A DNA stretch of 64,000 nt, from assembly GCA_002269645.1 (NCBI GenBank), contig NIVC01002391.1:20424-84423 (forward strand), read 5' to 3'. This stretch comes from Macrostomum lignano. Lineage: Eukaryota. The notes under the pieces were generated by a model. That model made no database searches and had not been told where the DNA came from. It was given only the letters and a program-made list of their open reading frames with translations. Below, one piece after another: positions 2,344 through 51,094 of this stretch (position 1 is the first letter of the stretch; each line of letters opens with the position of its first letter). The position numbers were made by a program, and so were the translations under genes.

Positions 2344-3019
2344 ATCACGTCTTGTCACCGAAATGTCCAGGGACCTTCCAAAAGTGTGTTCATTATTTGT
2401 TGCACCGTTGCTTCGAGCTTAGTTCTTTCTAGCTTTGTCATTCTTCACTAGGCCTAGCCTGGACTTTTCAGTGGGAGTTGTCGTCCTGTGACTTGCCAAT
2501 ATGGCATTGGCACATACATAGCCATATGGAAGGCAAATTTCAGTTAAAAGTAGGTTTTTTACAAATGCATAACTTTGCAATACAATTATATGAAATAAAA
2601 AGCAACAGGCCTATAGATAGGGCCTATAAACCAGAAAAGACAATAATTTGTCATATCCATAGACCCTATTCCTAATAGGCCTATAGAAAAAACTTTTTAA
2701 AAATATTAATTTGGCTTTCAATCTCTTTCATTAGGGTAATATTAATAGCAAACTAGGCCTGAATCATATTTGTCATAGAAATGTTTTTTGAATAAAGTGA
2801 CATAACAAAATGTGCTTTATTTTTACAATTAAAAATAAGTAAGTTTTGTAAGTAAGTAAGTAACTTACTTAGTAAGTTTGCCATAAATCTAGCATAAAAA
2901 TTCATTAGGAAACTAGCATAAAAATTAAAAATTCATAAAATGTTAAAATTGCTTTTTTTTATTAGAGGCGGGGGTTGTATGCACCCTGGCGCACTTTAAG
3001 TGACATTGGCACACAACTG

Positions 3020-3235
3020 GCAAGAGGCATTGCTGCCCATTCTGCCGACTCCCCTGAGCAGGCATACAAGCGTGCAGATACGTACGCAGGCACACACTCA
3101 CACAGGAGTATACAGCGGCCCTAACTTTATATTATTGTTAGGCATGTACACTTCACTGCACCTTGGGGGGTTGGCTCTCAAGGCCATTAATTGCACGAGC
3201 AGAGCCAAGCCGAGATTCCAATTCAGCCCCAAAAT
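3020..3235. repeat. Interspersed repeat of unknown class (other copies at ~19650-19860 direct and ~61270-61410 inverted)
   Basis: Colinear with 19650-19860 (gaggcatt.ctgcccatt...gttaggcatgtacacttcac...ccaagccgagattccaattcagccccaaa). A more diverged copy near 61270 contains gtgtacatgcctaac, the reverse complement of gttaggcatgtacac. Confidence 0.7.
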
Positions 3236-4756
3236 AATAAAATTGCTTAAAGTTAAATTATAAAATAGGCCTTTATTATTTTAAGGTGCAAAAGTTTTTT
3301 GACTTTTTTATCATATCAATTTTCTAAGTAAAATTTCAATTAGACTTATGTCCCCTTTAGGCCTCTTAATTTTTAAAATCTTTTCAATATCTAATTTAAT
3401 TAGGCTAGGCCTAGGCCTAGTTTATTTTTCATGTCATTTTTGGTTAGTAGAACTGGTCATTTTTTTCTAATAAAGGCCTATTTTGAAATATTTTTGTAAT
3501 TAAATATAGGTCATATGCCATATGCTGTGTAGGTATATCATAGCCTAAGTTATATTTAATTTAATTATGGCCCAGTCTGTATCAGCTTTTGCTCTAATAT
3601 ATTGTTTCATTTTATAGTCTAATAGGTATAGCCAATGCCAAAATTAGAGATTAGAGAAAGAGAATATCAAAAGATATTTTAGATAAAGTCTAGCTAGGCT
3701 AGGTCCAATTTAGATCTTAGTTAAACTTAATTTAGTTTGGTATTGAATTGAATAAAATTTCATATATATACAATATAAATTGCAAAATACAATTTAATCA
3801 TTCTAAGCCTATATGATTAATAATTCTAATAATAATTTTTTATCATTTTTGTCTTTATAGCCAATATAAGAGTGAATATAAATAGCTGCTAAAAACATTT
3901 TTAGGCCATAGTCAATATCAGCAAATAGTTTTTAAGCAAAAAAGCTATTATGTTTGTCATAACAAACAAAAGCTCTTATTTTGGTTATGGTTGCAATCTA
4001 AATATACTAAATCTCTAAGGTTTGTATGTTTGAATGAATTCTAAACTAAAATCAAGATCATATAGCAATGGTTGCAACATTATTTAATAGAGCAATGATT
4101 TATGCTATCCAAATAAGACAAGTTAGCAAGTAGTTGCACATGCATAAATGTCCATTTTGATTAAATAAACTAATTAGTAAATTAAATGAACTATAAAAAC
4201 TTTTTAAGTTCATGCACTTTGGGATTAAGTTTTTTTTCTTATATTTTTTATATATTTTCAAGAGTCTTTAGTAGTTAAATCCTTTGTGCTAAAACCTCTA
4301 ACAGTTAAAGCAGTTAACTCAAACTTTAAGGCAAGTCTGCAGGAATTGATAATAATGTGCCCTATCATGGCCTAGTTATCAAAGTCAAAAATACAATATA
4401 GTGCTCCAACAATATAATCTATAGTCGAATTTACCTATCTGACCCACTTAAAACAGATACATATAGTATAAGTATAAAGTATAAAGCTTAAGAAAAATTA
4501 AGTATACTTTTTGTGACACTATTGTATATGCAGTCATATATATACTTCAGTTTAACTGAAAGTAGATACCCAAACAGTTATTAGAAAGTCAACAGTAGGG
4601 TAAGTAGTTTCTGTTTCTAATGAAACTTTATCAGGTCCAACTTATGTGATGGCTGATTTATCTGAGAACACAAAAATCATGTAGTTAGTTATAGTAAATT
4701 TGAAACAGTGGATTCTAAAGCTTGAATTAGTACGCATATTGCAGCAGTCGTCAGTC

Positions 4757-7700
4757 ATGACTAGCCTAGACAACATGCTTAGCCGCGGCTCAGTGCGGGC
4801 ACTCAACAATGGCGAGGACTATCAGAACCCGGTGCTGAAGGTGCTCGGCCACCGCAAGGTTCCTGGCGGCGGGCAGGACCGCTACCGCCTACTCGTGACA
4901 GATGGCATCGATCAGCACTCTTACGTGATGCTGGGCACCCAGCTCAACTACCTGATCGAGGGCGACCAGCTGCCGCCTGGCACAGTTCTGCAGGTGACAA
5001 AGTACGTGCTCAACAATATGAAATCTGACAAGCCAATCCTGATTGTCATATCGCTAGACATTCTGGGCTCGGGCTCTGTGCCTGATCCTGCCAATAGCGA
5101 CGCCAATGGCACCGGAGCCCCCGCCGCGCAGCAGCAGCAGCAGCCGGTGAAGCCTCTCGCCGACAACAACCGGCCAGCCGCGTTCGCCGCTGTCCAGGAG
5201 ACACCGCCGCGTCCGACAGCCAGCAGCTACAGCAGCGGTGCGGGCGGCCGCGGGGGAGGCGGCGGTCAGCAGTTGGGGTTCGTGCCGCAGACGCCGCCGC
5301 ACTCTGGAAGGTCGTTCGGCGGAGGCAGCAGCGACCAATCGGCTGGCAGCGGCATTGACACCAGTCGGGTTCGTCCGATCTCATCGCTGAACCCGTATCA
5401 GAACAAGTGGACCATCTGCGGTCGGGTGACCCAGAAGAGTCAGGTGAGGCTGATTACATGGGTCATTGGGTCAGTCTGATCAATCAGCACCATTTAGTTC
5501 CTAACTGATAGTGCTACTTACATCAGTAGTGTCATTGACATTGCAGCATATCAGCCTACTTACATCAGTAGTGTCATTGACATTGCAGCATATCAGCCTA
5601 CTTACATCAGTAGTGTCATTGACATAGCAGCATATCAGCCTACTTACATCAGTAGTGTCATTGACATTGCAGCATATCAGCCTACTTACATCAGTAGTGT
5701 CATTGACATTGCAGCATATCAGCCTACTTTCATCAGTAGTGTCATTGACATTGCAGCATATCAGCCTACTTAAATCAGTAGCCAGTCACGAGCCCATCTG
5801 CAATATCCGCAGGTTCGCACCTGGTCAAACAGCCGAGGCGAGGGCAAGCTGTTCAGCTTCGTCCTGACCGACGACAGCAGCGAGATCCGCGTGACGGCCT
5901 TCAGAGACGAAGTGGACAAGTACTTCGACTTGGTGGAGCTGGGCCGCGCCATGTACATCAGCAGGGGCCAGTTGAAGGCGGCGAACAAGCAGTTCAACAA
6001 CACGCAGAACGAATACGAGATGGTGCTGAGCAGCGAGTCGCAGCTGCAGCAGTGCGACGATGCCGACGCTGCCGCGGTGCCCGAGATGAAGTTCAACTTC
6101 GTGCCGATCGCTCAGCTGGACACGGTGGAGCCGAACAAGTGGGTGGTTGTGGTAGCTGTGTGGCGCTTTGTCTTTGGCAAGTTCTTGGTGTTGCCGTGCA
6201 TATATAAGCTCTGTGAGCTTGTGGGACTCCGTTTGGGGGGCTCCCAAACGAAGGGTCTGTTGCAGTGTTTGGGCACTCCTTGTCTGTTGCAGTTTTTGGG
6301 CACTCCTTTGTTGCAGTGTTTAGGCACTCCTTTGTTGCAGTGTTTGGTGGCACTCAGTGTCTGTTGCAGTGTTTGGGCACTCCTTTGTTGCAGTGTTTGG
6401 GCACTCCGTGTCTGTTGCAGTGTTTAGGCACTCCTTTGTTGCAGTGTTTGGGCACTCCTTTGTTGCAGTGTTTGGGGCACTCCGTGTCTGTTGCAGTGTT
6501 TGGGGCACTCAGTGTCTGTTGCAGTGTTTGGGGCACTCCTTGTCTGTTGCAGTGTTTGGGCACTCCATATCTGTTGCAGTGTTTGGGCACTCCGTGTCTG
6601 TTGCAGTGTTTGGGCACTCCATGTCTGTTGCAGTGTTTGGTGGCACTCAGTGTCTGTTGCAGTGTTTGGTGGCACTCAGTGTCTGTTGCAGTGTTTGGTG
6701 GCACTCCAAATCTGTTGCAGTGTTTGGGCACTCCATGTCTGTTGCAGTGTTTGGTGGCACTCCATATCTGTTGCAGTGTTTGGGCACTCCATATCTGTTG
6801 CAGTGTTTGGGGCACTCCGTGTCTGTTGCAGTGTTTGGGCACTCCGTGTCTGTTGCAGTGTTTGGTGGCACTCCATATCTGTTGCAGTGTTTGGGCACTC
6901 CGTGTCTGTTGCAGTGTTTGGTGGCACTCCATATCTGTTGCAGTGTTTGGTGGCACTCCATATCTGTTGCAGTGTTTGGGCACTCCATATCTGTTGCAGT
7001 GTTTGGTGGCACTCCATATCTGTTGCAGTGTTTGGGCACTCCATATCTGTTGCAGTGTTTGGTGGCACTCCGTGTCTGTTGCAGTGTTTGGTGGCACTCC
7101 ATATCTGTTGCAGTGTTTGGTGGCACTCCAAATCTGTTGCAGTGTTTGGGCACTCCATGTCTGTTGCAGTGTTTGGGGCACTCCGTGTCTGTTGCAGTGT
7201 CTGTTGCAGTGTCTGTTGCAGTGTCTGTTGCAGTATTTGGAGCACTCCATATCTGTTGCAGTGTTTGGGCACTCCATATCTGTTGCAGTGTTTGGGCACT
7301 CCATATCTGTTGCAGTGTTTGGTGGCACTCCATATCTGTTGCAGTGTTTGGTGGCACTCCAAATCTGTTGCAGTGTTTGGGCACTCCATGTCTGTTGCAG
7401 TGTTTGGGCACTCCATGTCTGTTGCAGTGTTTGGGGCACTCCATGTCTGTTGCAGTGTTTGGTGGCACTCAGTGTCTGTTGCAGTGTTTGGGCACTCAGT
7501 GTCTGTTGCAGTGTTTGGGCACTCCATATCTGTTGCAGTGTTTGGGGCACTCCGTGTCTGTTGCAGTGTCTGTTGCAGTGCTGCAGTGACGCAACTAGGC
7601 AGAGCCCATGAGGATGCCCACACACGCACAACCCTTCCGCAGGTTCGTGGACGTCTGCGGCGTGGTGCACGAGACGCACGACGTGCAGACCATCGTGGGC

Positions 7701-8718
7701 AAGACCAGCAACCGGGAGATCGCAAAGCGGGACCTCACGCTGGTGGACAGCAGCGGCTGCTCCGTCCGCTGCACCCTGTGGGGTGACGAGGCGGTTAAGT
7801 TCAACGGCGAGAAGAAGCCGGTGGTGGCCGTCAAGGGCGCCAAGGTGTCGGACTTTGGCGGCAGGTCGCTGAGCTCCACCACCAACAGCTGCTTCCTGAT
7901 CAACCCGTCGATGCCCGAGGCAGACAGGCTTCGCGGCTGGTACCACATGGAGGGCCAGCAGATGCAGTTCGACACGTTCAGAGGCGACGGCGGAGCTGGC
8001 GGCGGTCCGGGCGGCGGAAGCGCCGTCTATCGCAACCTGAAGGACTGCAAGGCCGGCGGCTTCGGCACCGGGGACAAGTTCGAGTACTTCAGCTGCCTTG
8101 CCTGCATCATTCACATGAAGCGGGAGACGTGCCTGTACCAGGTGAGTGATAGGCTCTAATTGATTGCCTCTTGGTGCTCTGGCAGCCCCCCGCTGAGCCC
8201 CCGGCAACCGCCGCCTTGCAGGCCTGCCCGAAGCCCGACTGCAACAAGAAGGTGATCGAATTCAATGGCGAATACCGCTGCGAGAAATGCCAGTCCAGCT
8301 ACCCGAATTTCACCTGGCGATTCCTGCTGCAGGCGAATCTGGCTGATCACACCGACAACCAGTGGGTGACCTGCTTCCAGGTGAGCTGCTGTCGCCAGTT
8401 CTGTGAGCACTGAGTAGTTTATCTGAGTCAGCATTTCTTATCGCTGCCTCTGCTCATCATCAACAGGACACGGCCGAGAAGCTCCTGGGAGTGACCGCTC
8501 AGCAGCTCGGCCAGATGCGCTCGGACGGAGACGACAAGGGCCAGACAGGCGTGTTTGAGAAGGCCCTGTTCCAGCATCACCTGTTCACCATGCGGGCCAA
8601 GATGGAGAACTTCCAGGACGAGATGCGGCTGCGTGTTGTTGTGCAGGACGTGAAGCAGATGAACTTTGCTGAGGCCGGCCGCCTGTTGGTGAGCCAGATC
8701 GAGGCCATGGCCGTGTGA
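4757..8718 (+). CDS. RPA1: Replication protein A 70 kDa subunit, paralog a (5 exons, ~640 aa)
   Basis: Exons 4757-5443, 5813-6138, 7643-8141, 8222-8380, 8467-8718 all have GT-AG junctions and splice in frame (1923 nt). The product has RPA70N, DBD-A ([27 protein letters not shown]), DBD-B ([14 protein letters not shown]) and DBD-C with a C4 zinc ribbon ([10 protein letters not shown]...RCEKC). Confidence 0.97.
5497..5775. repeat. 42-bp minisatellite in RPA1a intron 1
   Basis: About 6 copies of cttacatcagtagtgtcattgacattgcagcatatcagccta. Confidence 0.95.
6256..7590. repeat. Variable ~25-30-bp minisatellite in RPA1a intron 2
   Basis: Repeated core ctgttgcagtgtttgg(g/tg)gcactcc(gt/at)gt; it produces spurious ORFs in all frames. 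Confidence 0.97.
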
Positions 8719-9235
8719 CTGATGCAGTCATAAGTTATCATTAAACTATCCCAGTAGCTCTGCTCTTCGTTTTAATGCCCTTCTCAAGTTGAACATGAAA
8801 CGATTTTTTACAAAACCAGTTTTCATAAGGCAAGCACTTGCCTATTTTTTGTAACTAACTTATTAACTTATTTGCAATTTTATTCAGTAAAATTTCAAGT
8901 GTATTGGGTTTGCATTTAAACGAATGGATTTCTTATTAATACTTAGGTTAATATTTTCTAACAATAGGAATCCGCATTTGAAATAGGCGACCAGTCTTGG
9001 CTACAAATGTCAATCTCATTAGTCAATAATAACTGGGTACTAAGGTACCAGTCAAATAAAATTGTATTTTCGCTAAAACAGCTGATTAAAATAATCGGGT
9101 TAACATGTCTGATCGAAATTATTTTTCTTAAATTTCTAATTGTCAGAACTTTTTGGTCTTGATTTATTTAGCATAGATTAGCCTGGCAGGTCCGCCTCTA
9201 TTACACGTACAGTCTCTTACCAGACTTGTTTTTAG

Positions 9236-9490
9236 CCGATGGGAAACACCGATGGGAAAACGCCGGAGGGAAACGCTGGAGGAGAAATCCTGCCGAGGGG
9301 AAACTCCGATGGGGGACGTCGGAAAGGAAACGCTGGAGGGGCTGGAGGGGAATCCCGCCGATGGGAAACGCTGGAGGGAAACGCTGTAGGGGAAATCCCG
9401 TCGAGGGGAATCGCCGGAGGGAAACGCTGGAAGGGAAACGCCGGAGGGAAACACTGGAAGGGAAACGCCGGAGGGGAACACCGAAGGAAA
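9236..9490. repeat. Degenerate GA-rich ~20-bp tandem repeat
   Basis: Repeated ggagggaaacgc(t/c)ggagg-like units. Confidence 0.8.
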
Positions 9491-9562
9491 ACTGCTTCTA
9501 TGGGACTGTTAAGTGTGCGGACTTCGGGGCGCACACGTGCATTAGGAAGTAAGGAACTCTAT

Positions 9563-10560
9563 TGTCAGATCAGTCACCGCAGCTAAAGTGGCGGAGGCCC
9601 CACTCGGACCAGTTGGTCTTCCCCGCCACATCCGACAGTCGGACTCTGGCCGGCACAGCTCTTTCTAGGCCGCGAGTTGCGGACTCACAAAGGCCTAATG
9701 CGCCTCTCGGTACGTGAGCAAGTTCTCCATTCTCAGACGAGCCAGAAGAAGCAAGTGCGTGACCGCAGGGCGAGGCATCCGGAGCAGCTTCTAAGGGTAT
9801 ACATCCGGACAGGACTCAACTTGCGTGCCCAGAACCTCTGCTTGCTGTTCAAACTTTAACGTCTGTAGATGTACATGTAGATGCAAATCACGCGCTTCTG
9901 GACCCTTGCCTTCTCTAAGGCAAAACCCTAGCGTCAGTTGCTAATAATAGCAATAGCGCCATGCAATCTGACGAAATCGGTCTCGCGCGTAATGGTGCAA
10001 TGTTTCCTGCCTATAAATGCGGACCCCTTCATGCCTCGTTCTGTCAAGGATTCTTTAAGCTCTGTTCTCTCCAGTAAACGCAGTTCTGCAATCGCCCTAT
10101 TTCTCCCATTGTCCTGACTCAGTTCTCATCCTAGCTAAGCCCAGACCTCTGAGTCTGCTCTGAGGCTAACACCGTCCTCCCAGCCGACTCACTGAGCCCG
10201 GCAGGATCTGCTGACTATTAGTGTCTGAAATCGCAAATCTGCCTGAAGTGCTGTGTTCGATCGTCTTTGTTATTGTATTTCGTTCCGACCTCTTGTTGAT
10301 CCTCACCTCAGTCCCTGAGACCCGAAGGGACTGGTGGCAGCAACTACCAACACTACTACTGATAAGTAGGCTCCTGGCATGGCAAGAGAGCCTGAGACAA
10401 CCCAAGAGCTTCTGTGCTAGCTCAACCTGAGAACCACAGGTACAACATTGGTGGCAGCGGTGGGATTTGAAGACCTGCCAGGCCACCTCAAGACAACCCC
10501 AAGCGAGAAGCTCATATACTTCAAGAAGAAAGAATTCGATGAGTAATGCAAGCACCATGG
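9563..10560 (+). mobile_element. LTR retrotransposon fragment: 5' LTR end plus tRNA-Leu primer-binding site
   Basis: ...TACAACA (LTR-like end at 10447) is followed by TGGTGGCAGCGGTGGGATT (10449-10467), complementary to the 3' end of eukaryotic tRNA-Leu(AAG/UAG). A TATA-like ctataaat lies at ~10011. The LTR left boundary is uncertain (TGT at 9563 or 9864). No gag/pol follows. Confidence 0.7.
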
Positions 10561-10627
10561 TTTTTTTCCAAGTGATTGAATCAGCGGATTAAATAATTGG
10601 ACTGTCTTTCTTTTATCTTGTAAACTA

Positions 10628-11327
10628 CAAGGACGACTTAAGTAGAAGGACGGGAAACCTCGTTTCTTAGAAAATTTTTGAAGGCACTTTTTCCCGAAAA
10701 AATACACTGCGGAGATAGGAAATTTTCATTTTTTCAGCACAAAAATTGCTATTACTTTTTATAGGAGGCAGATCCAGTGCTCATCTTTTGATACGTTGTG
10801 CCTTTTTTATTGCTCTCTATCGATATTTATAAAGCTTTTCGTTCAGAAAATTAGGATTCTATGTTAATTTTTTATTCTCCGTATATTTTCACGTGTCTTG
10901 TGCTTGAAATACATTAGAATGCCACGGCTCGGCTCTTTAGCTTCATGAGTCTTTTTTATCATTCTTACCCGACTGTGTAGCAAATATTTGTAACAGAGAT
11001 GATAAAATAGGTTCATAAAACCAAATATTGGAGCTGTGTCATGCATTTTTGTGATTTTTAAATACAGGAAATGTACGTAGAATAAAAAATTAACATAGAA
11101 TCCTAATTTTCTGAACCAAAAGCTTTATAAATATCGATAGAGCAATAAAAAAGGCACAATATATCAAAAGATGAGCACTGGATCTGCCTCCTATAAAAAG
11201 TAATAGCAATTTTTGTGCTGAAAAAATGAAAATTTCCTATCTCCGTAGTGTATTTTTTCGGGAAAAAGTGCCTTCAAAACTTTTCTAAGAAACGAGGTTT
11301 CCCGTCCTTCTACTTAAGTCGTCCTTG
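10628..11327. mobile_element. Non-autonomous hAT-like element (MITE) with ~245-bp TIRs
   Basis: 10628-10873 is the near-perfect reverse complement of 11083-11327. Termini CAAGG...CCTTG fit the hAT YARNG consensus. The flanks gtaaacta / gtaaactg form an 8-bp TSD with one mismatch. Confidence 0.88.
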
Positions 11328-12614
11328 GTAAACTGTACCATGCAGACACCACTTTGGGGATTATTTATTATTCATAATTCTGCAAAATTCACAAAGTAGG
11401 TTATTAATCTTCGGCTAAAGTGCCAGGCGCCGCAGGATGCATATTCCAGACTTCCTGTTACAAACAGTGCCTTTTCTGCCTACTCATATAGGCAGTAGGT
11501 TTTCTGCCTACTCATATTAGCTTAGCTTATTGCTCAGAGCTCGTATAACGCTAATTGGATGAAAGCTTGACTGAACTCATGGCCATTCATTATTAACTAT
11601 ACACCTCTGCTCAGAGGGAGAAGCAAGACTTGACGCTATTTATCTCGCGCTTGCAATCCTCGAGGCAGCCACCAATCTACCTGTTGAATCGGCTGACACA
11701 ACTACCACTTAGCGAGGCTGACTTGATCCGCACGTTGAGCCTTGCTTGAAAAACTGCTCAGCTGGGGCAAGGCAGTTGCATTGTTCTCATCAACTCGTGT
11801 TTGAACGTCTTTAGATATCTGAGCTGGCACCCCGAACTAGAAAAGTAACTGCGAACATAAACTTCTAACTCATTAGAACTTACCTTGACGAATTGAGTTC
11901 ACTCAATTGATCGCTACTTGAATTAAGCAACGAGTTCTTTGTAAATAAATGAATTGCATGAATTTTTGCTGCGAAAGATTGTTGCAGAAAAACTTCATTT
12001 ATCGCTTATTTTACGCTCGTATTTGAAAAGCTGATTTCAAGCTGAAAATTCCTTTAGTCTTGAAGTCGACTTTGCGTCAAATCAAGCGGAAATGTTCAGA
12101 TAGAGAGCAGCCGGAGATGCCAACCCCTGCCTTGATGCATTACAATGGGCAGCAAAATTATAGGTCAAAGAAACAAACACTTACGCTTGTCAAGTTAAGA
12201 AACTGATTCACTGCCAGCTATATTGCAAACTGGGCCAAATACATGGATAATATAGTTGAAACAAACAACCAAAACTACTGCCTCGCATGCAAGAAGATCC
12301 ACACTGAAAAATTTAAGAAATCATGGAATGCTACGCAGGATACTCAAGTAAAATTTGCGTAGCAAACACATAAAAGGTACGTAAAATATGCATATCGAAT
12401 CGTCAACTAACTAATTAGGAGGAAGCAATAAAAATGCACAGAAAACTACACAGTACGAGTTTGAAACTCGTAGTACGCTAACCTGCTTTTCTCCAGATTT
12501 CGTTAAAATACAAAAAATATTTAACACCAAGCCGTCAAATTATTTGTTTTTGAAATGCTACAAGTTGCAGTTCTGATTCAGCTACTCATCCAGTCCTCAT
12601 CGCGCTGGCGGGCC

Positions 12615-15600
12615 TCACACGGCCATGGCCTCGATCTGGCTCACCAACAGGCGGCCGGCCTCAGCAAAGTTCATCTGCTTCACGTCCTGCACAACAACAC
12701 GCAGCCGCATCTCGTCCTGGAAGTTCTCCATCTTGGCCCGCATGGTGAACAGGTGATGCTGGAACAGGGCCTTCTCAAACACGCCTGTCTGGCCCTTGTC
12801 GTCTCCGTCCGAGCGCATCTGGCCGAGCTGCTGAGCGGTCACTCCCAGGAGCTTCTCGGCCGTGTCCTGTTGATGATGAGCAGAGGCAGCGATAAAAAAT
12901 GCTGACTCAGATAAACTACTCAGTGCTCACAGAACTGGCGACAGCAGCTCACCTGGAAGCAGGTCACCCACTGGTTGTCGGTGTGATCAGCCAGATTCGC
13001 CTGCAGCAGGAATCGCCAGGTGAAATTCGGGTAGCTGGACTGGCATTTTTCGCAGCGGTATTCGCCATTGAATTCGATCACCTTCTTGTTGCAGTCGGGC
13101 TTCGGGCAGGCCTGCAAGGCGGCGGTTGCCGGGGGCTCAGCAGGGGGCTGCCAGAGCACCAAGAGGCAATCAATTAGAGCCTATCACTCACCTGGTACAG
13201 GCACGTCTCCCGCTTCATGTGGATGATGCAGGCGAGGCAGCTGAAGTACTCGAACTTGTCCCCGGTGCCGAAGCCGCCGGCCTTGCAGTCCTTCAGGTTG
13301 CGATAGACGGCGCTTCCGCCGCCCGGACCGCCGCCAGCTCCGCCGTCGCCTCTGAACGTGTCGAACTGCATCTGCTGGCCCTCCATGTGGTACCAGTCGC
13401 GAAGCCTGTCTGCCTCGGGCATCGACGGGTTGATCAGGAAGCAGCTGTTGGTGGTGGAGCTCAGCGACCTGCCGCCAAAGTCCGACACCTTGGCGCCCTT
13501 GACGGCCACCACCGGCTTCTTCTCGCCGTTGAACTTCACCGCCTCGTCGCCCCACAGGGTGCAGCGGACGGAGCAGCCGCTGCTGTCCACCAGCGTGAGG
13601 TCCCGCTTCGCGATCTCCCGGTTGCTGGTCTTGCCCACGATGGTCTGCACGTCGTGCGTCTCGTGCACCACGCCGCAGACGTCCACGAACCTGCGGAAGG
13701 GTTGTGCGTGTGTGGGCATCCTCATGGGCTCTGCCTGGTTGCGTCACTGCAGCACTGCAACAGACACTGCAACAGACACGGAGTGCTCCAAATACTGCAA
13801 CAGACACTGAGTGCCCCAAGCACTGCAACAGACACGGAGTGCCCAAACACTGCAACAGACACTGAGTGCCCAAACACTGCAACAGACACTGAGTGCCCAA
13901 ACACTGCAACAGACACGGAGTGCCCAAACACTGCAACAGACACGGAGTGCCCAAACACTGCAACAGACACGGAGTGCCCCCAACACTGCAACAGACACGG
14001 AGTGCCCAAACACTGCAACAGACACGGAGTGCCCCCAACACTGCAACAGACACTGAGTGCTCCAAACACTGCAACAGACACTGAGTGCCCAAACACTGCA
14101 ACAGACACGGAGTGCCACCAAACACTGCAACAGACAAGGAGTGCCCCAAACACTGCAACAGACACGGAGTGCTCCAAATACTGCAACAGACACGGAGTGC
14201 CCAAACACTGCAACAGACAAGGAGTGCCCAAACACTGCAACAGACACGGAGTGCCCCCAACACTGCAACAGACACGGAGTGCCCAAACACTGCAACAGAC
14301 ACGGAGTGCCCCCAACACTGCAACAGACACGGAGTGCCCAAACACTGCAACAGACACGGAGTGCCCCAAAAACTGCAACAAAGGAGTGCCCAAACACTGC
14401 AACAGACACGGAGTGCCCCCAACACTGCAACAGACACGGAGTGCCCAAACACTGCAACAGACACGGAGTGCCCAAACACTGCAACAGACACGGAGTGCCC
14501 CAAACACTGCAACAGACACGGAGTGCCCCAAACACTGCAACAGACACGGAATGCCCAAACACTGCAACAGACACGGAGTGCCACCAAACACTGCAACAGA
14601 CACTGAGTGCCACCAAACACTGCAACATACACGGAGTGCCCCAAAAACTGCAACAAAGGAGTGCCCAAACACTGCAACAGACACGGAGTGCCCCAAAAAC
14701 TGCAACAAAGGAGTGCCCAAACACTGCAACAGACACTGAGTGCCACCAAACACTGCAACAGACACGGAGTGCCTCAAAAACTGCAACAAAGGAGTGTCCA
14801 AACACTGCAACAGACACTGAGTGCCACCAAACACTGCAACAGACACGGAGTGCCCCGAAAACTGCAACAAAGGAGTGCCCAAACACTGCAACAGACACTG
14901 AGTGCCACCAAACACTGCAACAAAGGAGTGCCTAAACACTGCAACAAAGGAGTGCCCAAAAACTGCAACAGACAAGGAGTGCCCAAACACTGCAACAGAC
15001 CCTTCGTTTGGGAGCCCCCCAAACGGAGTCCCACAAGCTCACAGAGCTTATATATGCACGGCAACACCAAGAACTTGCCAAAGACAAAGCGCCACTCAGC
15101 TACCACAACTACCCACTTGTTCGGCTCCACCGTGTCCAGCTGAGCGATCGGCACGAAGTTGAACTTCATCTCGGGCACCGCGGCAGCGTCGGCATCGTCG
15201 CACTGCTGCAGCTGCGACTCGCTGCTCAGCACCATCTCGTATTCGTTCTGCGTGTTGTTGAACTGCTTGTTCGCCGCCTTCAACTGGCCCCTGCTGATGT
15301 ACATGGCGCGGCCCAGCTCCACCAAGTCGAAGTACTTGTCCACCTCGTCTCTGAAGGCAGTCACGCGGATCTCGCTGCTGTCGTCGGTCAGGACGAAGCT
15401 GAACAGCTTGCCCTCGCCTCGGCTGTTTGACCAGGTGCGAACCTGCGGATATTTCAGATGGGCTTGTGACTGGCTACTGATTTAAGTAGGCTGATATGCT
15501 GCAATGTCAATGACACTACTGATGTAAGTAGGCTGATTTGCTGCAATGTCAATGACACTACTGATGTAAGTAGGCTGATATGCTGCAATGTCAATGACAC

Positions 15601-18450
15601 TACTGATGTAAGTAGGCTGATATGCTGCTATGTCAATGACACTACTGATGAAAGTAGGCTGATATGCTGCTATGTCAATGACACTACTGATGTAAGTAGG
15701 CTGATATGCTGCAATGTCAATGACACTACTGATGAAAGTAGGCTGATATGCTGCTATGTCAATGACACTACTGATGTAAGTAGGCTGATATGCTGCAATG
15801 TCAATGACACTACTGATGTAAGTAGGCTGATATGCTGCAATGTCAATGACACTACTGATGTAAGTAGGCTGATATGCTGCAATGTCAATGACACTACTGA
15901 TGAAAGTAGGCTGATATGCTGCTATGTCAATGACACTACTGATGTAAGTAGGCTGATATGCTGCTATGTCAATGACACTACTGATGAAAGTAGGCTGATA
16001 TGCTGCTATGTCAATGACACTACTGATGTAAGTAGGCTGATATGCTGCAATGTCAATGACACTACTGATGTAAGTAGGCTGATATGCTGCAATGTCAATG
16101 ACACTACTGATGAAAGTAGGCTGATATGCTGCTATGTCAATGACACTACTGATGTAAGTAGGCTGATATGCTGCAATGTCAATGACACTACTGATGTAAG
16201 TAGGCTGATATGCTGCAATGTCAATGACACTACTGATGTAAGTAGGCTGATATGCTGCAATGTCAATGACACTACTGATGTAAGCAGCACTATCAGATAG
16301 GAACTGAATGACACTACTGATGTAAGCAGCACTATCAGATAGGAACTGAATGAAACTACTGATGTAAGTAGCACTATCAGTTAGGAACTGAATGACACTA
16401 CTGATGTAAGTAGCACTATCAGATAGGAACTGAATGACACTACTGATGTAAGCAGCACTATCAGATAGGAACTGAATGACACTACTGATGTAAGCAGCAC
16501 TATCAGATAGGAACTGAATGACACTACTGATGTAAGTAGCACTATCAGTTAGGAACTGAATGACACTACTGATGTAAGTAGCACTATCAGATAGGAACTG
16601 AATGACACTACTAATGTAAGCAGCACTATCAGATAGGAACTGAATGACACTACTGATGTAAGCAGCACTATCAGTTAGGAACTGAATGACACTACTGATG
16701 TAAGTAGCACTATCAGATAGGAACTGAATGACACTACTGATGTAAGCAGCACTATCAGTTAGGAACTGAATGACACTACTGATGTAAGTAGCACTATCAG
16801 ATAGGAACTGAATGACACTACTGATGTAAGCAGCACTATCAGTTAGGAACTGAATGACACTACTGATGTAAGCAGCACTATCAGTTAGGAACTGAATGAC
16901 ACTACTGATGTAAGCAGCACTATCAGATAGGAACTGAATGACACTACTGATGTAAGCAGCACTATCAGATAGGAACTGAATGACACTACTGATGTAAGTA
17001 GCACTATCAGTTAGGAACTGAATGACACTGTTGTTGTTAAACGGGGGTGGGAGGAGAAGCGCTGCCCGCGGATCAGCCCTAAGGGGGCTCTGCCGCATGG
17101 ATCTTGCTGTGGGCCATACTACCAGGGGCTTTAAGCCCGAGAGGCCACTATTGGAACCAGAGCTCAGGACTCTGGGGAGAGCATGGAGCATTGGAGCTAC
17201 TAACCCAAGCCTATGGACTAGACACCGGCAACCCAAAAGTGGAATCAGGGACGGTGCTAGGACCGAGTCCACCCAGGCCACCACCCAGCAGACAAGTCCC
17301 GGGAGTGCGCGAAAAAAGAATTGGAATGAAAAAATGTTTGGGTTACTACTGAAAGCGGTCCTAGAGCAGGGAATATCCTGAAGTCTACGGAAATGGCTTG
17401 ATAATTGGAGTGAGTCTAGAAGGCTTGTTTCCGAGGGCTGAATGACACTACTGATGTAAGCAGCAGTATCAGTTAGGAACTGAATAACACTACTGATGTA
17501 AGCAGCAGTATCAGTTAGGAACTGAATAACACTACTGATGTAAGCAGCAGTATCAGTTAGGAACTGAATGACACTACTGATGTAAGCAGCAGTATCAGTT
17601 AGGAACTGAATAACACTACTGATGTAAGCAGCACTATCAGTTAGGAACTGAATAACACTACTGATGTAAGTAGCACTATCAGTTAGGAACTGAATAACAC
17701 TACTGATGTAAGCAGCACTATCAGTTAGGAACTGAATAACACTACTGATGTAAGTAGCACTATCAGTTAGGAACTGAATGGTGCTGATTGATCAGACGGA
17801 TCCAATGAACCATGCAATCAGCCTACCTGACTCTTCTGGGTCACCCGGCCGCAGACGGTCCACTTGTTCTGATACGGGTTCAGCGAGGAGATCGGACGAA
17901 CCCGACTGGTGTCAATGCCGCTGCCAGCCGACTGGTCGCTGCTGCCTCCACCGAAGGACCTTCCAGAGTGCGGCGGCGTCTGCGATATGAAGTTAGCGCC
18001 ACTGCTGAAGCCACTGTGTGTCGGGCGCGGCGGAGTCTCCTGGAGGGTGGTGAACCCGGGCGGTCGGTTGCTGTCGGCGAGAGGCTTCTGCGTTGAGGCC
18101 TCTGGCTCTATCAGAGACTGGTTAGGCTCGGACCCCATGCCCAGGATTTCAAGCGATATGCCAATCAGGATCTGCTTGTCCGCCTTGGTCTTATTAATAA
18201 CGTACTTAGTCAGCCTCAGAACTGTGCCAGGCAATAACTCGCCATTTTCAATCAGGTAGTTGAGCTGGGTGCCCAGCAACATGTAAGAGTGCTGCTCAAC
18301 TCCGTCAGTTACAAACAGACGGTAGCGGTCCTGTCCGCCGCCAGGAACCTTGCGGTGGCCGAGCACCTTCAGCACTGGGTTCTGGTAGTCCTCGCCATTA
18401 CTGAGAGCCCGCACGGAGCCGCGGCTGAGCATGCTGTCTAGGTCAGACAT
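12615..18450 (-). CDS. RPA1: Replication protein A 70 kDa subunit, paralog b (5 exons, ~619 aa)
   Basis: Minus-strand exons 18450-17827, 15442-15117, 13690-13192, 13111-12953, 12866-12615 have GT-AG junctions and splice in frame (1860 nt). Intron positions match paralog a. Confidence 0.97.
13750..15000. repeat. Minisatellite in RPA1b intron 2 (same family as 6256-7590, inverted)
   Basis: Repeated aacactgcaacagacacggagtgccc units. Confidence 0.97.
15482..17778. repeat. Compound 42-bp minisatellite in RPA1b intron 1 (two related unit types)
   Basis: 15482-~16280 has unit aagtaggctgatatgctgcaatgtcaatgacactactgatgt; ~16280-17778 has unit aagcagcactatcagataggaactgaatgacactactgatgt. Both share aatgacactactgatgtaag. 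The array is interrupted at 17030-17437. Confidence 0.96.
17030..17437 (-). mobile_element. Short retroposed insertion (5'-truncated LINE or SINE) in the intronic array
   Basis: Flanked by the 12-bp direct repeat ctgaatgacact (17018-17029 and 17438-17449). The minus strand ends in a tttaacaacaac tail. There is weak similarity to ~19470-19540. Confidence 0.75.
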
Positions 18451-21039
18451 CAGTGCTTTGTTGACAGTAAGTGTTGGGTCAGCTTTAGCTGGTTATATCA
18501 CTTATTGTTCCGCCATAGCCTAAGATATGGCTATAAGAAGTTACAGATATGGAGACTTTAGGCAAAACATATGGATATGGTTAGGCCTATGCTATGGGAA
18601 TACATTTTCTATACCTAGTTCTTGTATTGAGCGATTATTAGTCCCTAAATAACTGAGACTTAAATTAAGACTTAAAAGACAATTGGCACCCTTGATTGCA
18701 TGGGTGGGCGTACAGCAGTAGGCCTAGTTTAAATGAATGAATATTGAAAATTTCAAAGCTTTTGTGAGGGGGAGCTTTTAAGTCCCTTGGGTTAGAGACT
18801 TAAACGATAGGGATTTTTTGCTATCATATACACATTGTGTGATTGGAATGGTAGGGGACTAAAGTTAAGATAAATCTTTAGGGCGAGTCTCCTATCAAGA
18901 GGTAAACTGAAAAACCCTCCTATAGGGCAGCAAGCCACAAGGGTATCACCTATCCAGTTTTAGATTGGAGGCTGGGCCAAGGGGTCGGGAAAGGGGCACA
19001 AGGCGCAAGAGGACCCGGACTCAGCCAGTATCCCCGATTTGGGACGAACTCATTCCCCGGGACGCCAATCCACTGTCAGGATGAGAGCCGAGACACAGAG
19101 GCAGGGAGCTTCCAGATGAGCCTAGCAGATGGAACCGAGGACAAAGCAAGATGGACCGGGCAGGGCAGAGCTCAAAATTCCAGGCTGGTTAGAGGTGGCT
19201 TTTAGCCAGTTGGAGTGGCAGGTGCTGCCAATGCGTACATTAATGGGAAAAAAAACAATAAAAACAATGGGAGGAGCACCTGAACCCTAAAAACCCGGGG
19301 CTCAGCCTCAGGGCTGGCATGCTACTGGGCTCTAACCATACACCTTTGTGAATGGTAATTCTTTCCTGCAGGGTGGGTACGACTGGGGGGCTCAAGTCCT
19401 ATTCTAGCCACACTGCAGTCCAGAGTACACACTCACAGCAGGTACACCCCCTAAACCAAGGCCAAGGGCCAAAAAGCTAATTAGAATGAAAAAGGGTTAT
19501 TTTTAGAATGGGCACAGCCCCTCCAGAGCAGACCCTTAGAAAATTGGGCTAGCCAGAGCTAGGTCAATCAGATTGCGCACAACCCTTAGACAAGCTACCA
19601 GAGAGGCAGCCAGGGTAAAAACAGTCAGAGACTGTCTTTACCGGCGAGAGGCATTACTGCCCATTCCACTGACTCCCCTGAGCAGGCATATAAGTACGCG
19701 GATATGTATGCAGGCACACACTCACACAGGAGAGTATAGCCGCCCTAACTTTATTTTATTGTTAGGCATGTACACTTCACTATGCCTTGGGGGGGGGTTG
19801 GCTCTCAAGGCCACTAATTGCACAAGTAGAGCCAAGCCGAGATTCCAATTCAGCCCCAAATTAATGTGACTGCACTTGAAATCAAGCTTGGGTTGCTAGC
19901 ACACCAGAGCCTGCACTAGACTGCTAGGCTATGGCCCCCCTTCATCATTCTATACTTTACTATGGCAGATTTAAGGGGGAGGCACATAGAATGCATGAGT
20001 TTGAATTTTTTATATGGAAAATATACATTATTGTATATTTATATATATGATATTATATATACATGTACCTTAGTAATCTGCACCCCTCTATATTGCATTG
20101 AATAATGGAAAAATTTCATATATGAAATTATTGCATTTTAAAAAAATATATTTTGAACTTTTTGAAATTCTATATAGGCCTATACTCATATCTTTAGAAT
20201 AGGTGGCAATGCCTCCTTGCTAGGGCTTATATCTAAATAGGCTTACTTGGAACCACTTATTAGGCCCTATATTATTAATTAGGAAGATAGAATTTAATAT
20301 TCTTAGCCAAATAGCTTTTTATCAATTTATCAATAGACTTTTATCTATTATTTTCATCTCATGCAATAAATATTTAGTTAGCTATCAAAATTTATCATTA
20401 CTTACAAATATAAATGCACTATAATTATTGCTTAATGCTTACAATAAAATTTGTTCAATTATATCAATGATTTCTAAAAATCATAAATGTGCAACTGCTG
20501 CAGCACTGGCAAACTTGGCCAATCTAGCCAACATAAATTGTAGTAGACCAGAGATAAGTCACAAACAAAAATGCCCATCTAAAAAGAATATAGAAGTATG
20601 CGTAGTACAAATTAGATGATGAGGCATTTAGCCTTAATAAAACAGTTGTAATTAGGCCTATTCCCACCATTTACCTAGTTACATATACACACAAGTAACT
20701 TAACTCTTTAGTCTTACATATGAGTATCCAAGCCACTTATTCAAATAGGGCTATACAGGCATGGCCCTTTGAAGTATCCCTGTATAGCATATGCAGGTTT
20801 TAGTAATTCTATTCCAATAGGACTACAGAATGCAAATCTTGTTGCAAAGGCTTTGCCTATGCTTTGGCTATGCCATTATTCTAGTTATATTAAATTCAAT
20901 CTTCTAAAGTGAATTTCAAAGAGTAGACCCTATTATTGAAATAGGATTGCCCTAGAGAACTCCTTTAGTTATTGCTAGATTTAGGCATATGTGCTAGTTT
21001 CATCAATTTTTAAGAGAAAGCAGCTATTTTGCTCTTATA

Positions 21040-49357: not shown

Positions 49358-50014
49358 TCACTTATTCTCGGCATTGTCGTGCGTGTGCCAGGTCAGACGC
49401 TCCTCGTAGAACCGAATGACCACCTGGGGACACTTGATATTGGCTTGGCGGGCCGGCACCAGGTCGGCCTCGTCATGATCCACCCACTTCATGAGGAACA
49501 TCAGCTCGCCGCTCGAGTCCGTGGCGCCAACAATTCTGTCAGCCTGCAGGCCGCGCTCGAATCCGCGCAGTTTAGTAGCGCCGCTCCCCGCTGGCCCGTC
49601 GGACTCGGCCAGCTTCGCCTCCTTGGACTTTTTGGCGGCCTTCTCGCCTGTCGGCTTCCTGGTGCCGCTGCCAGAGGCCGAGTCGGCGTCACCGCCGCCG
49701 CTGGCCCCGACGCGGCGCTTCTTCTCCGACGGGCCGTGCTTTTTCCTCTCGGCCCGGGTGGACTCGAATTCCGCTACAATTTCCGGACAGTCGCAGTTCT
49801 CCTCCGGCTCCCAGGTGTTGTCTGAATGCGGATAGTTCTTCCACTTGATGAGGTACTCCTTCTTGCCGTTGCGAATCCGGCTGTCCATGATCTTCTCCAC
49901 CTGGTATTCGTCGGCGTCCTCTTCCTCTTCAATTTCGGGTTGGACGTTGACAGCGGCAGCTGGCGGCTCCTCATCGGCGTCGCGGGCCTCGTCGGATTTG
50001 CGTTTTTCAGGCAT
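49358..50014 (-). CDS. HP1: Heterochromatin protein 1 (chromobox; chromo + chromo shadow domains), 218 aa
   Basis: Chromodomain [37 protein letters not shown], a basic hinge, and chromo shadow domain [28 protein letters not shown]...[18 protein letters not shown] at 50014 is preceded by an acceptor-like tctagccag at 50022. AATAAA lies on the minus strand near 49261. Confidence 0.96.
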
Positions 50015-51094
50015 TTCAGAGCTGGCTAGAGAAACGAGAGGAACTGAAATTGAATTCATTAAAGGACTACCTAAATGCTCTGCTAAGAAAAAAGCTGCAA
50101 CGACTCAAAATTGAAAGGTAAAAGCTCGTGAAATTGGCAAACAAGTCTAAGCAGCAGAGGCAGCAACTAAATTAGTTTCTTTCGACATCATTTCAGCCAT
50201 CTGCAGCTATGGAACAGCTAGATTCAAGTGATCTGGCTGTTAATCAACCTGAAACTAGTGCTAAAATCAGCACAATTAGAACGTCCATCTCTTTAGGCAG
50301 AAAGAGACTTAGGCCATCTGGCATGGCTGATATACTATCCAAAGGTGCCATTTAATTGGCCAATCAAATGTATCAACAGAAGAGCTTTGTGGTGCTCAGG
50401 TCAGGTGAGATCATTTAAAATGAATAAGCTAATTGATTGATAGAAAAAAGAACCATTCCAACTAACTAGGCCTATCAAAAATACAATCTTACAAATGACC
50501 TAACTGTGACCAAATTATTAAGGCTAAATGCCTCATCATCTAATTATGTCTGTATTTTTTAGATTGGCCCTAGGCATTTCTGCAACTTAGGCCTACTTTG
50601 TCCTTGGCTAGGCCTGGCCCCTTGCTAGCCAACTAGATTGGCTAGTTTAGCCAGGTATTGTACATGTATGTTCTATGGTATATAGCCTAGTCCTATCATA
50701 GGCCTATTGGTTTCCATGCTTTTTGGTGCCTAGTTTCTGGTATCCCAAATTAGGTGCCTTAGTTTATGATGCCTAATTATTAAAATAATTTTATAATATA
50801 ATAATTGTTCTACAAACTGTATTTTTTTCTTAATAAAAGCTTGTCCTTTTTGTTAAACTGGTACATACATGCCCAACACCCATCCAACCTGTCCAAACTG
50901 GATGGGTGAAATGGCCACTGGCCAAGGTAAGTTGCAAAATCAAAAATGCAAAAAACAAAAAATTGGGGGAAGATAAAAAAAGAAGAGGAAGAGAAAGGGA
51001 AAAGAAAAGAGGGAGAAGAGAGAGAGGGGAAAGAGAGAGAAGAAAAGAGAAAAAGGCAAGAAAAGTCGTATACAAAGTGAAAATTAAATTGCAA

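Follow-up and report, generated by a model that had tools for sequence, protein, structure and literature searches.

Two neighbouring RPA70 (RPA1) genes of Macrostomum lignano very probably represent an old inverted duplicate that has been homogenised by repeated, non-reciprocal gene conversion between its arms, and comparison of the sequences shows that conversion also went on after the genome triplication. The pair, RPA1-A and RPA1-B, lies in the window (the whole 64,000-nucleotide stretch of contig NIVC01002391.1 analysed here), and we compared it with its relatives on contigs L001 and L003. An earlier note on this DNA had favoured an old duplication with ongoing arm-to-arm conversion, and this proposal is supported by a step in dS, by the absence of fixed A/B differences in the homogenised block, and by alleles specific to one genome copy that are shared by both of its arms. 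The pair is a new example of a known process, concerted evolution, and a clear though ordinary one.

Two convergent RPA70 genes

The window carries two intact five-exon genes in convergent (tail-to-tail) orientation. Gene models, six in all from the window and the two related contigs, were assembled manually with GT..AG introns. The genes had been described as converging over a 3.9-kb spacer, and the models bear this out:

4757..8718, + strand: RPA1-A gene (RPA70, 640 aa); spliced model free of stop codons, every intron GT..AG
4757-5443, 5813-6138, 7643-8141, 8222-8380, 8467-8718, + strand: RPA1-A exons; TGA stop at 8716-8718
12615..18450, - strand: RPA1-B gene (RPA70, 619 aa); intact spliced model
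18450-17827, 15442-15117, 13690-13192, 13111-12953, 12866-12615, - strand: RPA1-B exons; stop codon is the complement of 12615-12617
8719..12614, no strand: unique spacer between the two stop codons, 3896 bp, holding both 3' UTRs; no inverted homology between its halves

The RPA1-A protein equals NCBI PAA58298.1 as well as a UniRef entry, the RPA1-B protein is identical to UniRef A0A1I8JBH3, and all six gene models (window, L001, L003) match database proteins exactly. Pfam domains in RPA1-A were Rep-A_N (8-104), tRNA_anti-codon (218-302), REPA_OB_2 (328-424) and Rep_fac-A_C (486-629), and RPA1-B has the same four; in both proteins PF04057, PF01336, PF16900 and PF08646 occur above curated cut-offs in the RPA70 order (DBD-F, DBD-A, DBD-B, DBD-C). 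Nearly all flatworm, mollusc and vertebrate RPA70 matches listed aligned at 40-48% identity over 98-100% of the query, with E down to 1e-189. Both genes are thus assigned to RPA70/RPA1 by the order of the four OB folds and by full-length similarity. The DBD-A/B/C core is the predicted DNA-binding and trimerisation core (with RPA32 and RPA14) of both proteins. The N-domains matched human RPA70N structures with E = 7e-17 (A) and 2e-13 (B), and both retain the arginines that align with human 'IRP' and 'RYRLL'.

Divergence along the pair and edges of the block

Along its length the pair falls into an N-terminal part, a transition zone and a homogenised core:

4757..5287, + strand: unconverted part of A; codons 1-177, N-terminal OB fold (DBD-F, 70N) and most of the linker
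17983..18450, - strand: unconverted part of B, on the same basis; codons 1-156
5288..5513, + strand: transition zone of A; last 52 codons of exon 1 (from QTPPHSG) and first 70 nt of intron 1
17757..17982, - strand: transition zone of B, on the same basis
5514..8718, + strand: homogenised core, arm A; intron 1 array, exon 2, intron 2 and exons 3-5 to the stop
12615..15741, - strand: homogenised core, arm B

In the N-terminal part 105 of 468 aligned bases differ (22%) and there are three indels of 10, 20 and 33 nt, versus 25 differences in 1812 bases over the rest of the pair (Fisher p = 9e-53). A check for uniform dS, named in the earlier note, showed a non-uniform profile: over codons 1-177 dS was 0.59-0.64, and from QTPPHSG onward it stayed at 0.010-0.044 as far as the stop, i.e., 15- to 60-fold lower in the block, and the step was present in all three genome copies. 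The exon 1 alignment holds 532 matches, 83 mismatches and 81 gap columns. Near-identity had been claimed from the end of exon 1 through exons 2-5 and introns 3-4, and the counts agree: matching bases were 324/326 in exon 2, 493/499 in exon 3, 158/159 in exon 4 and 252/252 in exon 5 (9 differences in 1236 bases), and 79/80 in intron 3 and 85/86 in intron 4 (2 differences in 166; 98.8% identity combined). Unique parts of intron 2 were 98-99% identical between the arms. From exon 2 to the stop there were 14 differences in 1587 aligned bases outside the minisatellites. A single BLAST alignment pairs 5514-8718 with 15741-12615, with gap-free stretches of 99% identity between 5514-6401 and 14854-15741 and between 7514-8718 and 12615-13819. 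After QTPPHSG (A 5288, B 17982) the proteins differ at two residues: I/V in KWTI/VCG (A 5414, B 17856), in the last part of exon 1, and G/D in RLRG/DWYH (A 7936, B 13397), the latter being, as had been seen before, the single amino-acid difference in exons 2-5.

One could propose that no conversion took place, and that extreme purifying selection and codon bias keep the block identical, leaving the N-terminal part free to vary. The RPA70 DNA-binding core is indeed highly conserved, and GC3 in the block is very high (0.89). However, dS collapses in the block, the similarity seen in the exons extends equally to introns 3-4 and to unique intron 2 sequence although the flanks are unalignable, and the N-terminal part is itself constrained (dN/dS 0.2-0.3) yet has a dS of 0.6. 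Purifying selection cannot account for the intron identity, which refutes this explanation and leaves it with practically no probability. The higher GC3 of the block (0.88-0.89 versus 0.72-0.79 in the N-terminal part) is what GC-biased conversion would give. In the N-terminal part dN/dS was 0.29, with 0.21 for DBD-F and 0.2-0.4 for the divergent part overall; values below 1 are read as constraint on both versions of the N-domain, not as positive selection, and both N-domains look functional and under purifying selection.

At the 3' edge likeness stops at the first base past the TGA, which is followed by CTGATGCAG in A and by GGCCCGCC in B, as sharply as the earlier note had described. Its further description of the 3' UTRs, 5' flanks and most of exon 1 as unrelated or much diverged also stands: A and B gave no alignment over the 1 kb of 5' flank and 1 kb of 3' flank tested. 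The 3' flank of A is conserved across the three genome copies, and so is that of B, but the two are mutually unrelated; the spacer is oriented alike in every copy. At the outer boundary, identity declines by degrees, from 99% through 95% and 78% to nothing. In the transition zone A and B differ by 4.9% in the window, 4.4% in L003 and 1.3% in L001, and one fixed A/B site (5414) is retained there.

A sharp step inside exon 1 would likewise arise if the whole gene had been duplicated recently and a third, divergent RPA1 had overwritten exon 1 in one of the copies. Our protein search returned A-type and B-type RPA70 as the only ones in M. lignano, the next matches being at most 48% identical and belonging to other phyla, and showed no third M. 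lignano RPA1 locus with an exon 1 matching A or B. Furthermore, the 5' and 3' flanks are unrelated, contrary to recent duplication, and A-type and B-type N-terminal parts each occur in three of three genome copies. We consider such an overwrite exceedingly unlikely.

Introns 1 and 2 are long and contain minisatellites (42-bp and 27/55-bp units) of unequal length in the two arms, and because of these length differences the raw identity of the block is only 94%:

5514..5781, + strand: A intron 1 minisatellite; 42-bp unit, 6.4 copies, all type 1 (TRF and unit typing)
15474..17779, - strand: B intron 1 minisatellites (TRF and unit typing); TRF arrays of type 1 (15474-16284), type 2 mixed with type 3 (16265-17029) and type 3 (17438-17779)
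6255..7569, + strand: A intron 2 minisatellite; 27/55-56-bp unit (TRF)
13764..15000, - strand: B intron 2 minisatellite (TRF)

About 400-460 bp between the last two B intron 1 arrays fall outside the TRF arrays. Unit typing found no type 1 units in intron 1 of the L001 and L003 B genes, and therefore the type 1 array beside exon 2 in the window B gene looks copied from A. In intron 2 the 24-mer Jaccard index was 0.34 between the window A and B arrays, versus 0.14 and 0.21 between window B and the other B arrays; the arrays were most similar within L001 (0.46).

Three genome copies and the age of conversion

Previously, the assembly was described as holding three paralogous genome copies, with a genome-wide coding divergence among them of 1.1% (PMC10733133). 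The three contigs fit these copies: orthologues across them have dS of 0.01-0.06, in agreement with the published value. The A/B split is estimated to be about 10-60 times older than the separation of the three copies, and the presence of the same convergent pair, with the same two main boundaries, on three separately assembled contigs shows that the duplication predates the triplication.

The same observation makes a collapse or chimera on the window contig unlikely. A block produced by collapse, chimerism or in-silico homogenisation of two more divergent genes might nevertheless be suspected in a triplicated, repeat-rich genome polished with multi-mapping short reads that included RNA-seq. 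However, the three contigs share one architecture and all six genes have private variants and minisatellite lengths of their own; identity is just as high in the introns, where RNA reads do not reach, as in the exons; and the arms, at 3-6 kb, are below typical PacBio read length. Each of the six proteins, with the G->D and A->V changes that occur in one copy only, is also present among the M. lignano entries of UniRef, which are listed apart from the NCBI Mlig_3_7 models. Polishing would also be expected to propagate the commonest alleles; it would not produce variants confined to a single copy yet present in both of its arms. We accordingly regard an artefact of assembly or polishing as a very improbable source of the block. 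At the level of single bases, polishing used short DNA and RNA reads (PMC5730564) and 93% of read pairs map to multiple loci (PMC10733133), which could partly blur patterns among near-identical copies; a single inbred line and a single PacBio data set underlie all three contigs.

Across the six genes, fixed A/B differences make up 97 of the 110 variable sites in the N-terminal part and none of the 34 in the block, which here begins with exon 2 and ends at the stop (Fisher p = 1e-22). These differences are unpolarised: A and B are compared within M. lignano, and the lineages are the three genome copies, not species. Five substitutions and one 5-bp insertion are common to both arms of a single genome copy only. 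In L001, both arms carry the insertion (GTGTT) and L001-only alleles in exon 2 (positions 291 and 321), exon 3 (position 409) and intron 2 (position 17); in the window, both arms carry a window-only allele in exon 5 (position 33). At positions 457 and 469 of exon 3 the window reads T/C, L001 reads C/C and L003 reads T/T.

The A-type/B-type mosaic edge in exon 1 and intron 1 is placed differently in the three genome copies. In L001, gene A carries B-type alleles in its exon 1 tail and opens intron 1 with type 3 repeats, and intron 1 of gene B begins with A-type sequence; the B-gene intron 1 donor is GTAGGC in the window and L003 and GTGAGG in L001-B. The comparison shows conversion in both directions, A to B and B to A, with differing end points.

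The arms differ at 6 sites in L001, 14 in the window (block) and 16 in L003, as compared with 11-20 between genome copies. The similarity of the last two arm counts to the between-copy range, and the fact that both main boundaries are common to the three copies, would suit a single event, i.e., one large conversion or segmental replacement of the 3' three quarters of one paralogue shortly before triplication, with the arms independent since. However, this would require parallel mutation at at least five sites plus an identical 5-bp insertion in both L001 arms, and it leaves unexplained the absence of fixed A/B differences in the block across copies, the copy-specific mosaics of exon 1 and intron 1, and the greatest intron 2 array likeness being found within L001. 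We regard a single event as improbable. Because the window arms differ about as much as the genome copies do, the case for recent conversion is strong in L001 but in the window confined to exon 5 and the intron 1 array. When run lengths at polymorphic sites were permuted, p was 1e-4 for L001, 0.017 for L003 and 0.08 for the window; tests of this GENECONV type are known to be weak when conversion spans most of the region (PMC3924837).

A model for the pair and its meaning

In the repeated-conversion model, an RPA70 gene would have been duplicated in inverted, tail-to-tail orientation long before the recent triplication, and the copies would then have repeatedly repaired or copied each other by non-reciprocal conversion between the arms of the inverted repeat. 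Conversion would have ranged, introns included, from a point 52 codons before the end of exon 1 as far as the stop, erasing differences within this range and leaving the first 177 codons, the promoters and the 3' UTRs untouched. The predicted outcome is two expressed-looking proteins with a near-identical DBD-A/DBD-B/DBD-C core and distinct N-terminal interaction domains and linkers. At the 5' end, tracts probably stop where the linker just upstream is 22% diverged, with a 33-nt indel 13 nt from the edge; at the 3' end they probably stop where homology ends, at the stop codon, a limit that could mark the inner junction of the initial inverted duplication or stem from later replacement of one 3' UTR. 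Selection for two N-domains, and possibly two UTRs, may help to keep the edges in place.

A stronger proposal, possible but rather doubtful, is a selected modular arrangement in which the worm needs two RPA70 isoforms with distinct N-domains, linkers and 5'/3' regulation, conversion keeps the core matched, and selection holds the edges. One isoform may serve stem-cell replication, for example, and the other the germline or repair. Conversion may be tolerated or favoured, keeping both cores identical and matched to the same RPA32 and RPA14, and selection against tracts entering the N-domain or UTRs may fix both edges, including that at the stop codon.

The Hsp70 pair of Drosophila consists of inverted duplicate genes that evolve in concert by gene conversion. 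The Drosophila Amy pair likewise shows long-term concerted evolution (PMC2588116). Like these, the RPA1 pair is an old two-copy duplicate with near-identical gene bodies, diverged flanks and divergence increasing toward the block edges. Unlike these, it is homogenised over part of the coding sequence, the whole N-terminal domain and linker being paralogue-specific; its tract contains long minisatellite introns, and three genome copies in one animal give replicate outcomes. Primate sex-chromosome palindromes combine inverted arms, a unique spacer and arm-to-arm conversion; the RPA1 pair resembles them in its razor-sharp inner arm/spacer boundary and in conversion that keeps the genes intact. 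A large palindrome of that type was rejected: the arms (~3.4-6 kb) comprise one gene body and hold no intergenic sequence, identity is ~99% rather than >99.9%, and the outer edge is graded.

Reviewed dispersed paralogue pairs also have no detectable homology beyond the coding sequence and converted regions that end at coding limits, and purifying selection is said in that review to keep similarity sufficient for conversion. Those pairs are dispersed and mostly intron-less, whereas the RPA1 genes are adjacent and inverted, 2-4 kb of intron is co-converted, and the 5' limit lies within the coding sequence. Plants have multiple RPA70 paralogues with divided roles that have diverged over their full length; M. 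lignano likewise has more than one large RPA subunit per genome, but here only 70N and the linker differ. Divergence islands held by selection against conversion were described for RHD/RHCE, opsins and colobine RNases (PMC3924837) and for the GOT1 paralogues of Tigriopus (PMC3728101). As in these cases, a paralogue-distinguishing segment persists beside homogenised sequence; in contrast to them, dN/dS in the divergent RPA1 part (0.2-0.4) indicates constraint, and selection at the boundary is putative.

The locus is a compact case for the study of tract length, of tract stops (an indel-rich linker and the end of homology) and of possible seeding of exchange by intronic minisatellites, one genome offering three replicate outcomes of one conversion process with shared boundaries and differing tracts, direction and minisatellite content. 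For dating, it cautions that whole-gene Ks of the pair would greatly underestimate the age of the duplication, and for annotation, that short reads and RNAi probes from exons 2-5 cannot separate the paralogues. Altogether, the two predicted RPA70 isoforms of M. lignano are alike except for the 70N domain and linker, and they would be distinguishable, or could be separately knocked down, only via exon 1 or the UTRs.

The convergent RPA70 pair and its three copies

The window, part of contig NIVC01002391.1 in assembly GCA_002269645.1 (Mlig_3_7), carries two genes for RPA70 (RPA1, the replication protein A large subunit), designated A and B, that converge tail to tail. Locus L002, which was reached via the annotated protein P0005 (the NCBI model of gene B), lies wholly within the reverse complement of the window.

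Exons of the two RPA70 genes in the window
4757-5443, 5813-6138, 7643-8141, 8222-8380, 8467-8718; + strand; gene A, 640 aa
18450-17827, 15442-15117, 13690-13192, 13111-12953, 12866-12615; - strand; gene B, 619 aa

Every intron of both genes follows GT..AG, both reading frames are intact, and both proteins show the complete RPA70 domain order (Rep-A_N, DBD-A, DBD-B, Rep_fac-A_C). The stop codons are 3896 bp apart, confirming the convergent pair across a spacer of ~3.9 kb described in the earlier note. Segment counts also bore out the claimed near-identity of exons 2-5 and introns 3-4, since A and B in the window were identical at 324/326 positions of exon 2, 493/499 of exon 3, 158/159 of exon 4, 252/252 of exon 5, 79/80 of intron 3 and 85/86 of intron 4. 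The near-identical stretch starts at QTPPHSG (A 5288, B 17982) and, as had been claimed, ends abruptly at the stop codon: likeness stops at the first base past TGA, and neither the 5' nor the 3' flanks of A and B could be aligned. Two amino-acid differences were found downstream of QTPPHSG, namely the G/D difference in exon 3 (A 7936, B 13397), which is the single difference previously read in exons 2-5, and an additional I/V difference in the exon 1 tail (A 5414, B 17856). The divergence ascribed to exon 1 resides in the N-part (the first 177 codons of A and 156 of B, comprising the N-terminal OB fold, DBD-F, and most of the linker), where 105/468 aligned bases differ and indels of 10, 20 and 33 nt occur. 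The step between the N-part and the rest (105/468 vs 25/1812) was highly significant (Fisher p = 9e-53).

The same convergent A/B pair was found on contigs NIVC01000240.1 (locus L001) and NIVC01000670.1 (locus L003), on which spacer and flanks align collinearly with those of the window (~86-98% identity across aligned segments, with indels). Previous work showed that ~85% of this assembly is present in three paralogous copies, diverging by 2.2% overall and 1.1% in coding sequence (PMC10733133), and the three loci fit this published triplication. All six genes are intact, and each encodes a protein identical to an NCBI or UniRef entry. In all three copies the 3' boundary falls at the stop codon and the dense run of A/B differences stops at the identical exon 1 column; each type of 3' flank, A and B, is conserved from copy to copy, with no relation between the two types. 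Because these boundaries are common to the three copies, the inverted duplication and both main boundaries are older than the triplication. Collapse or chimerism of a single contig is very unlikely, because three contigs carry the same pair and boundaries; the copies represent one inbred line and one PacBio data set. In a protein search for orthologues from other species, all matches above 50% identity were from M. lignano, with no other Macrostomum among them, and the three subgenome copies stood in for cross-species trees.

Exchange between the arms after the copies separated

Substitution rates were estimated by the Nei-Gojobori method. Over codons 1-177, A vs B gave dS of 0.59-0.64 and dN/dS of 0.29 (0.21 for DBD-F alone, 0.44 for the linker), compared with dS from QTPPHSG to the stop of 0.044 in the window, 0.010 in L001 and 0.027 in L003. 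Thus dS is far from uniform along the gene (0.59-0.64 vs 0.010-0.044), and the uniform dS that the earlier note had set against its own reading was not found. The introns match as closely as the exons do, so protein-level selection cannot account for the identity. GC3 was higher in the block, i.e. the homogenised stretch from exon 2 to the stop codon, than in the N-part (0.88-0.89 vs 0.72-0.79; p = 5e-4 and 1e-6), which is consistent with GC-biased conversion without proving a GC bias. G+C alternates sharply over the whole window, with gene bodies and transposon frames at 50-64% and intergenic sequence at 30-34%.

Site classes were counted over the six genes, leaving out minisatellites from the block (1609 columns). 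The N-part contained 110 variable sites, of which 97 were fixed A/B differences and none was a variant shared across paralogues, while the block contained 34 variable sites and no fixed A/B difference (Fisher p = 1e-22 for the fixed-difference contrast). Five block sites showed an allele in both arms of a single copy only, either L001 (exon 2 positions 291 and 321, exon 3 position 409, intron 2 position 17) or the window (exon 5 position 33), and a GTGTT insertion in intron 2 is common to both L001 arms. The two L001 genes differed at 6 sites; genes from different copies differed at 11-20. The window shows T/C at exon 3 positions 457 and 469, L001 shows C/C and L003 shows T/T, a pattern like that of an old A/B difference resolved in opposite directions. 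Across the transition zone, which runs from QTPPHSG through 70 nt into intron 1, A/B divergence was 4.9% (window), 4.4% (L003) and 1.3% (L001). In L001 the exon 1 tail of gene A has B-type alleles and intron 1 of gene B has an A-type start. These 5'-edge mosaics record distinct events that ran both ways and ended at different points.

A run-length permutation on polymorphic sites only gave p = 0.08 for the window pair, for which its power was low; the site-class counts and Fisher tests were more informative. Polishing of the assembly used short DNA and RNA reads that map to multiple loci (PMC10733133, PMC5730564), so single-base patterns could be blurred, but this would spread majority alleles rather than produce alleles confined to the two arms of one copy. 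Altogether, the dS step, the absence of fixed differences in the block, and the copy-specific shared alleles support the earlier proposal of an old duplication with ongoing arm-to-arm conversion.

Introns 1 and 2 are long and packed with minisatellites, which the earlier note did not mention.

Intron minisatellites in the window
5514-5781 (A), 15474-17779 (B); intron 1, 42-bp unit
6255-7569 (A), 13764-15000 (B); intron 2, 27/55-bp unit

The arms carry unequal copy numbers (in the window, A and B measure 369 and 2384 bp for intron 1 and 1504 and 1426 bp for intron 2), and copy number varies across all six genes (intron 1, 285-2384 bp; intron 2, 1091-1993 bp). The intron 1 repeats comprise three unit types that mark A-type vs B-type ancestry: intron 1 of L001 gene A opens with 42-bp repeats of the B type (type 3), and window gene B has an A-type (type 1) array adjoining exon 2, which the L001 and L003 B genes lack. 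Likeness among intron 2 arrays was highest within L001 (Jaccard 0.46), and the window B array scored 0.34 against the window A array but only 0.14 and 0.21 against the remaining B arrays.

Mechanism and edges of the block

These results show an old inverted duplicate with recurrent non-reciprocal exchange confined to one block. One arm would be repaired from the other, presumably without crossover because spacer orientation is the same in all three copies; their spacers are collinear, with no inversion between copies of the kind that would signal crossover between the arms. The 5' limit would be set by heterology; the 33-nt indel sits 13 nt upstream of the 5' edge, inside 22%-diverged sequence. 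The 3' limit would be set by the end of homology. That end could mark an inner junction, left either by the original inverted duplication or by a later 3' UTR replacement. A second possibility is that UTR divergence preceded the onset of conversion, as was proposed for yeast duplicates in which concerted evolution is confined to coding sequence (PMC3924837). A repeat search of the spacer for displaced homology (9-nt seed) turned up nothing beyond a local foldback and 20-27-nt matches at chance level, neither flank gave an inverted match when compared with the entire window by BLAST, and no repeat-element signature was found at either stop-codon junction; the data are therefore compatible with either explanation.

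A transposable element directly after one stop was rejected as the cause of the sharp edge, as both 3' flanks are unique within the window. A 226-bp repeat (3016-3238 and 19640-19865, 87.6% identity), 1.2-1.5 kb upstream of both genes, is direct rather than inverted, which rules it out as an arm remnant; it is probably a dispersed repeat.

Other features of the window
10628-11327; near-perfect mid-spacer foldback, ~700 bp, made up of nested inverted repeats with arms of 189 nt (98%) and then 74 nt (96%)
1327-1513; weaker relative of this foldback
9241-9492; degenerate G-rich tandem repeat in the spacer, 0.5 kb downstream of gene A (13/27-nt unit, ~18 copies, 65-67% matches)
36109-38154; - strand; reverse transcriptase frame (Pfam)
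34940-35842; - strand; RNase H frame (Pfam)
27468-28253; + strand; reverse-transcriptase fragment (Pfam)
49358-50059; - strand; HP1-like ORF with chromo and chromo-shadow domains
58689-59819; - strand; Core-2/I-branching glycosyltransferase ORF

The spacer foldback, probably a small foldback or MITE-like element, is apparently also present in L001, where the alignment spans it, and is absent from L003, which has no counterpart of window 10373-11332. The retrotransposon frames are probably non-LTR, because Pfam gave no integrase or protease match in 34940-38154 or 27468-28253. tRNA and Rfam scans of the window gave no matches.

Concerted evolution and the two N-terminal modules

The pair is a case of concerted evolution of an inverted gene pair, a known process to which this locus adds a case. 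The same process operates in the Drosophila Amy genes (PMC2588116) and in yeast duplicate pairs (PMC3924837), and the arm-to-arm conversion resembles that of palindromes. Unlike those systems, the RPA1 pair is homogenised in only part of its coding sequence and keeps one whole domain distinct, has long minisatellite-bearing introns inside the converted tract, and offers three replicate histories through the triplicated genome. Literature searches, including by the four gene identifiers, found nothing on this locus, and papers naming both Macrostomum lignano and gene conversion did not treat it, judging by their titles and abstracts.

Annotated A-type proteins start with QSSVM right after TTGCAG (window 4734-4756), which suggests a putative spliced-leader acceptor 12 nt upstream of the gene A ATG. 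B-type models start with (N)KALM and have no preceding AG (window 18451-18465); 5'-end formation may differ between A and B. P0005 (615 aa) lacks DTVEPNK at the exon 2/3 junction (window 15117-15140), a peptide present in the UniRef gene B entry A0A1I8JBH3 (P0126) and in every other copy; the omission could reflect a different donor site used in the transcript or a model error.

Both N-domains match human RPA70N structures, and in both the arginines that align with human 'IRP' and 'RYRLL', residues lining the basic partner-binding cleft, are conserved. Both are under purifying selection. The annotation of this assembly is transcript-based (PMC5730564), and A-type and B-type gene models exist in all three copies. 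Judged from sequence, the pair most likely represents two working RPA70 isoforms that share the DNA-binding and trimerisation core and differ in their N-terminal modules.
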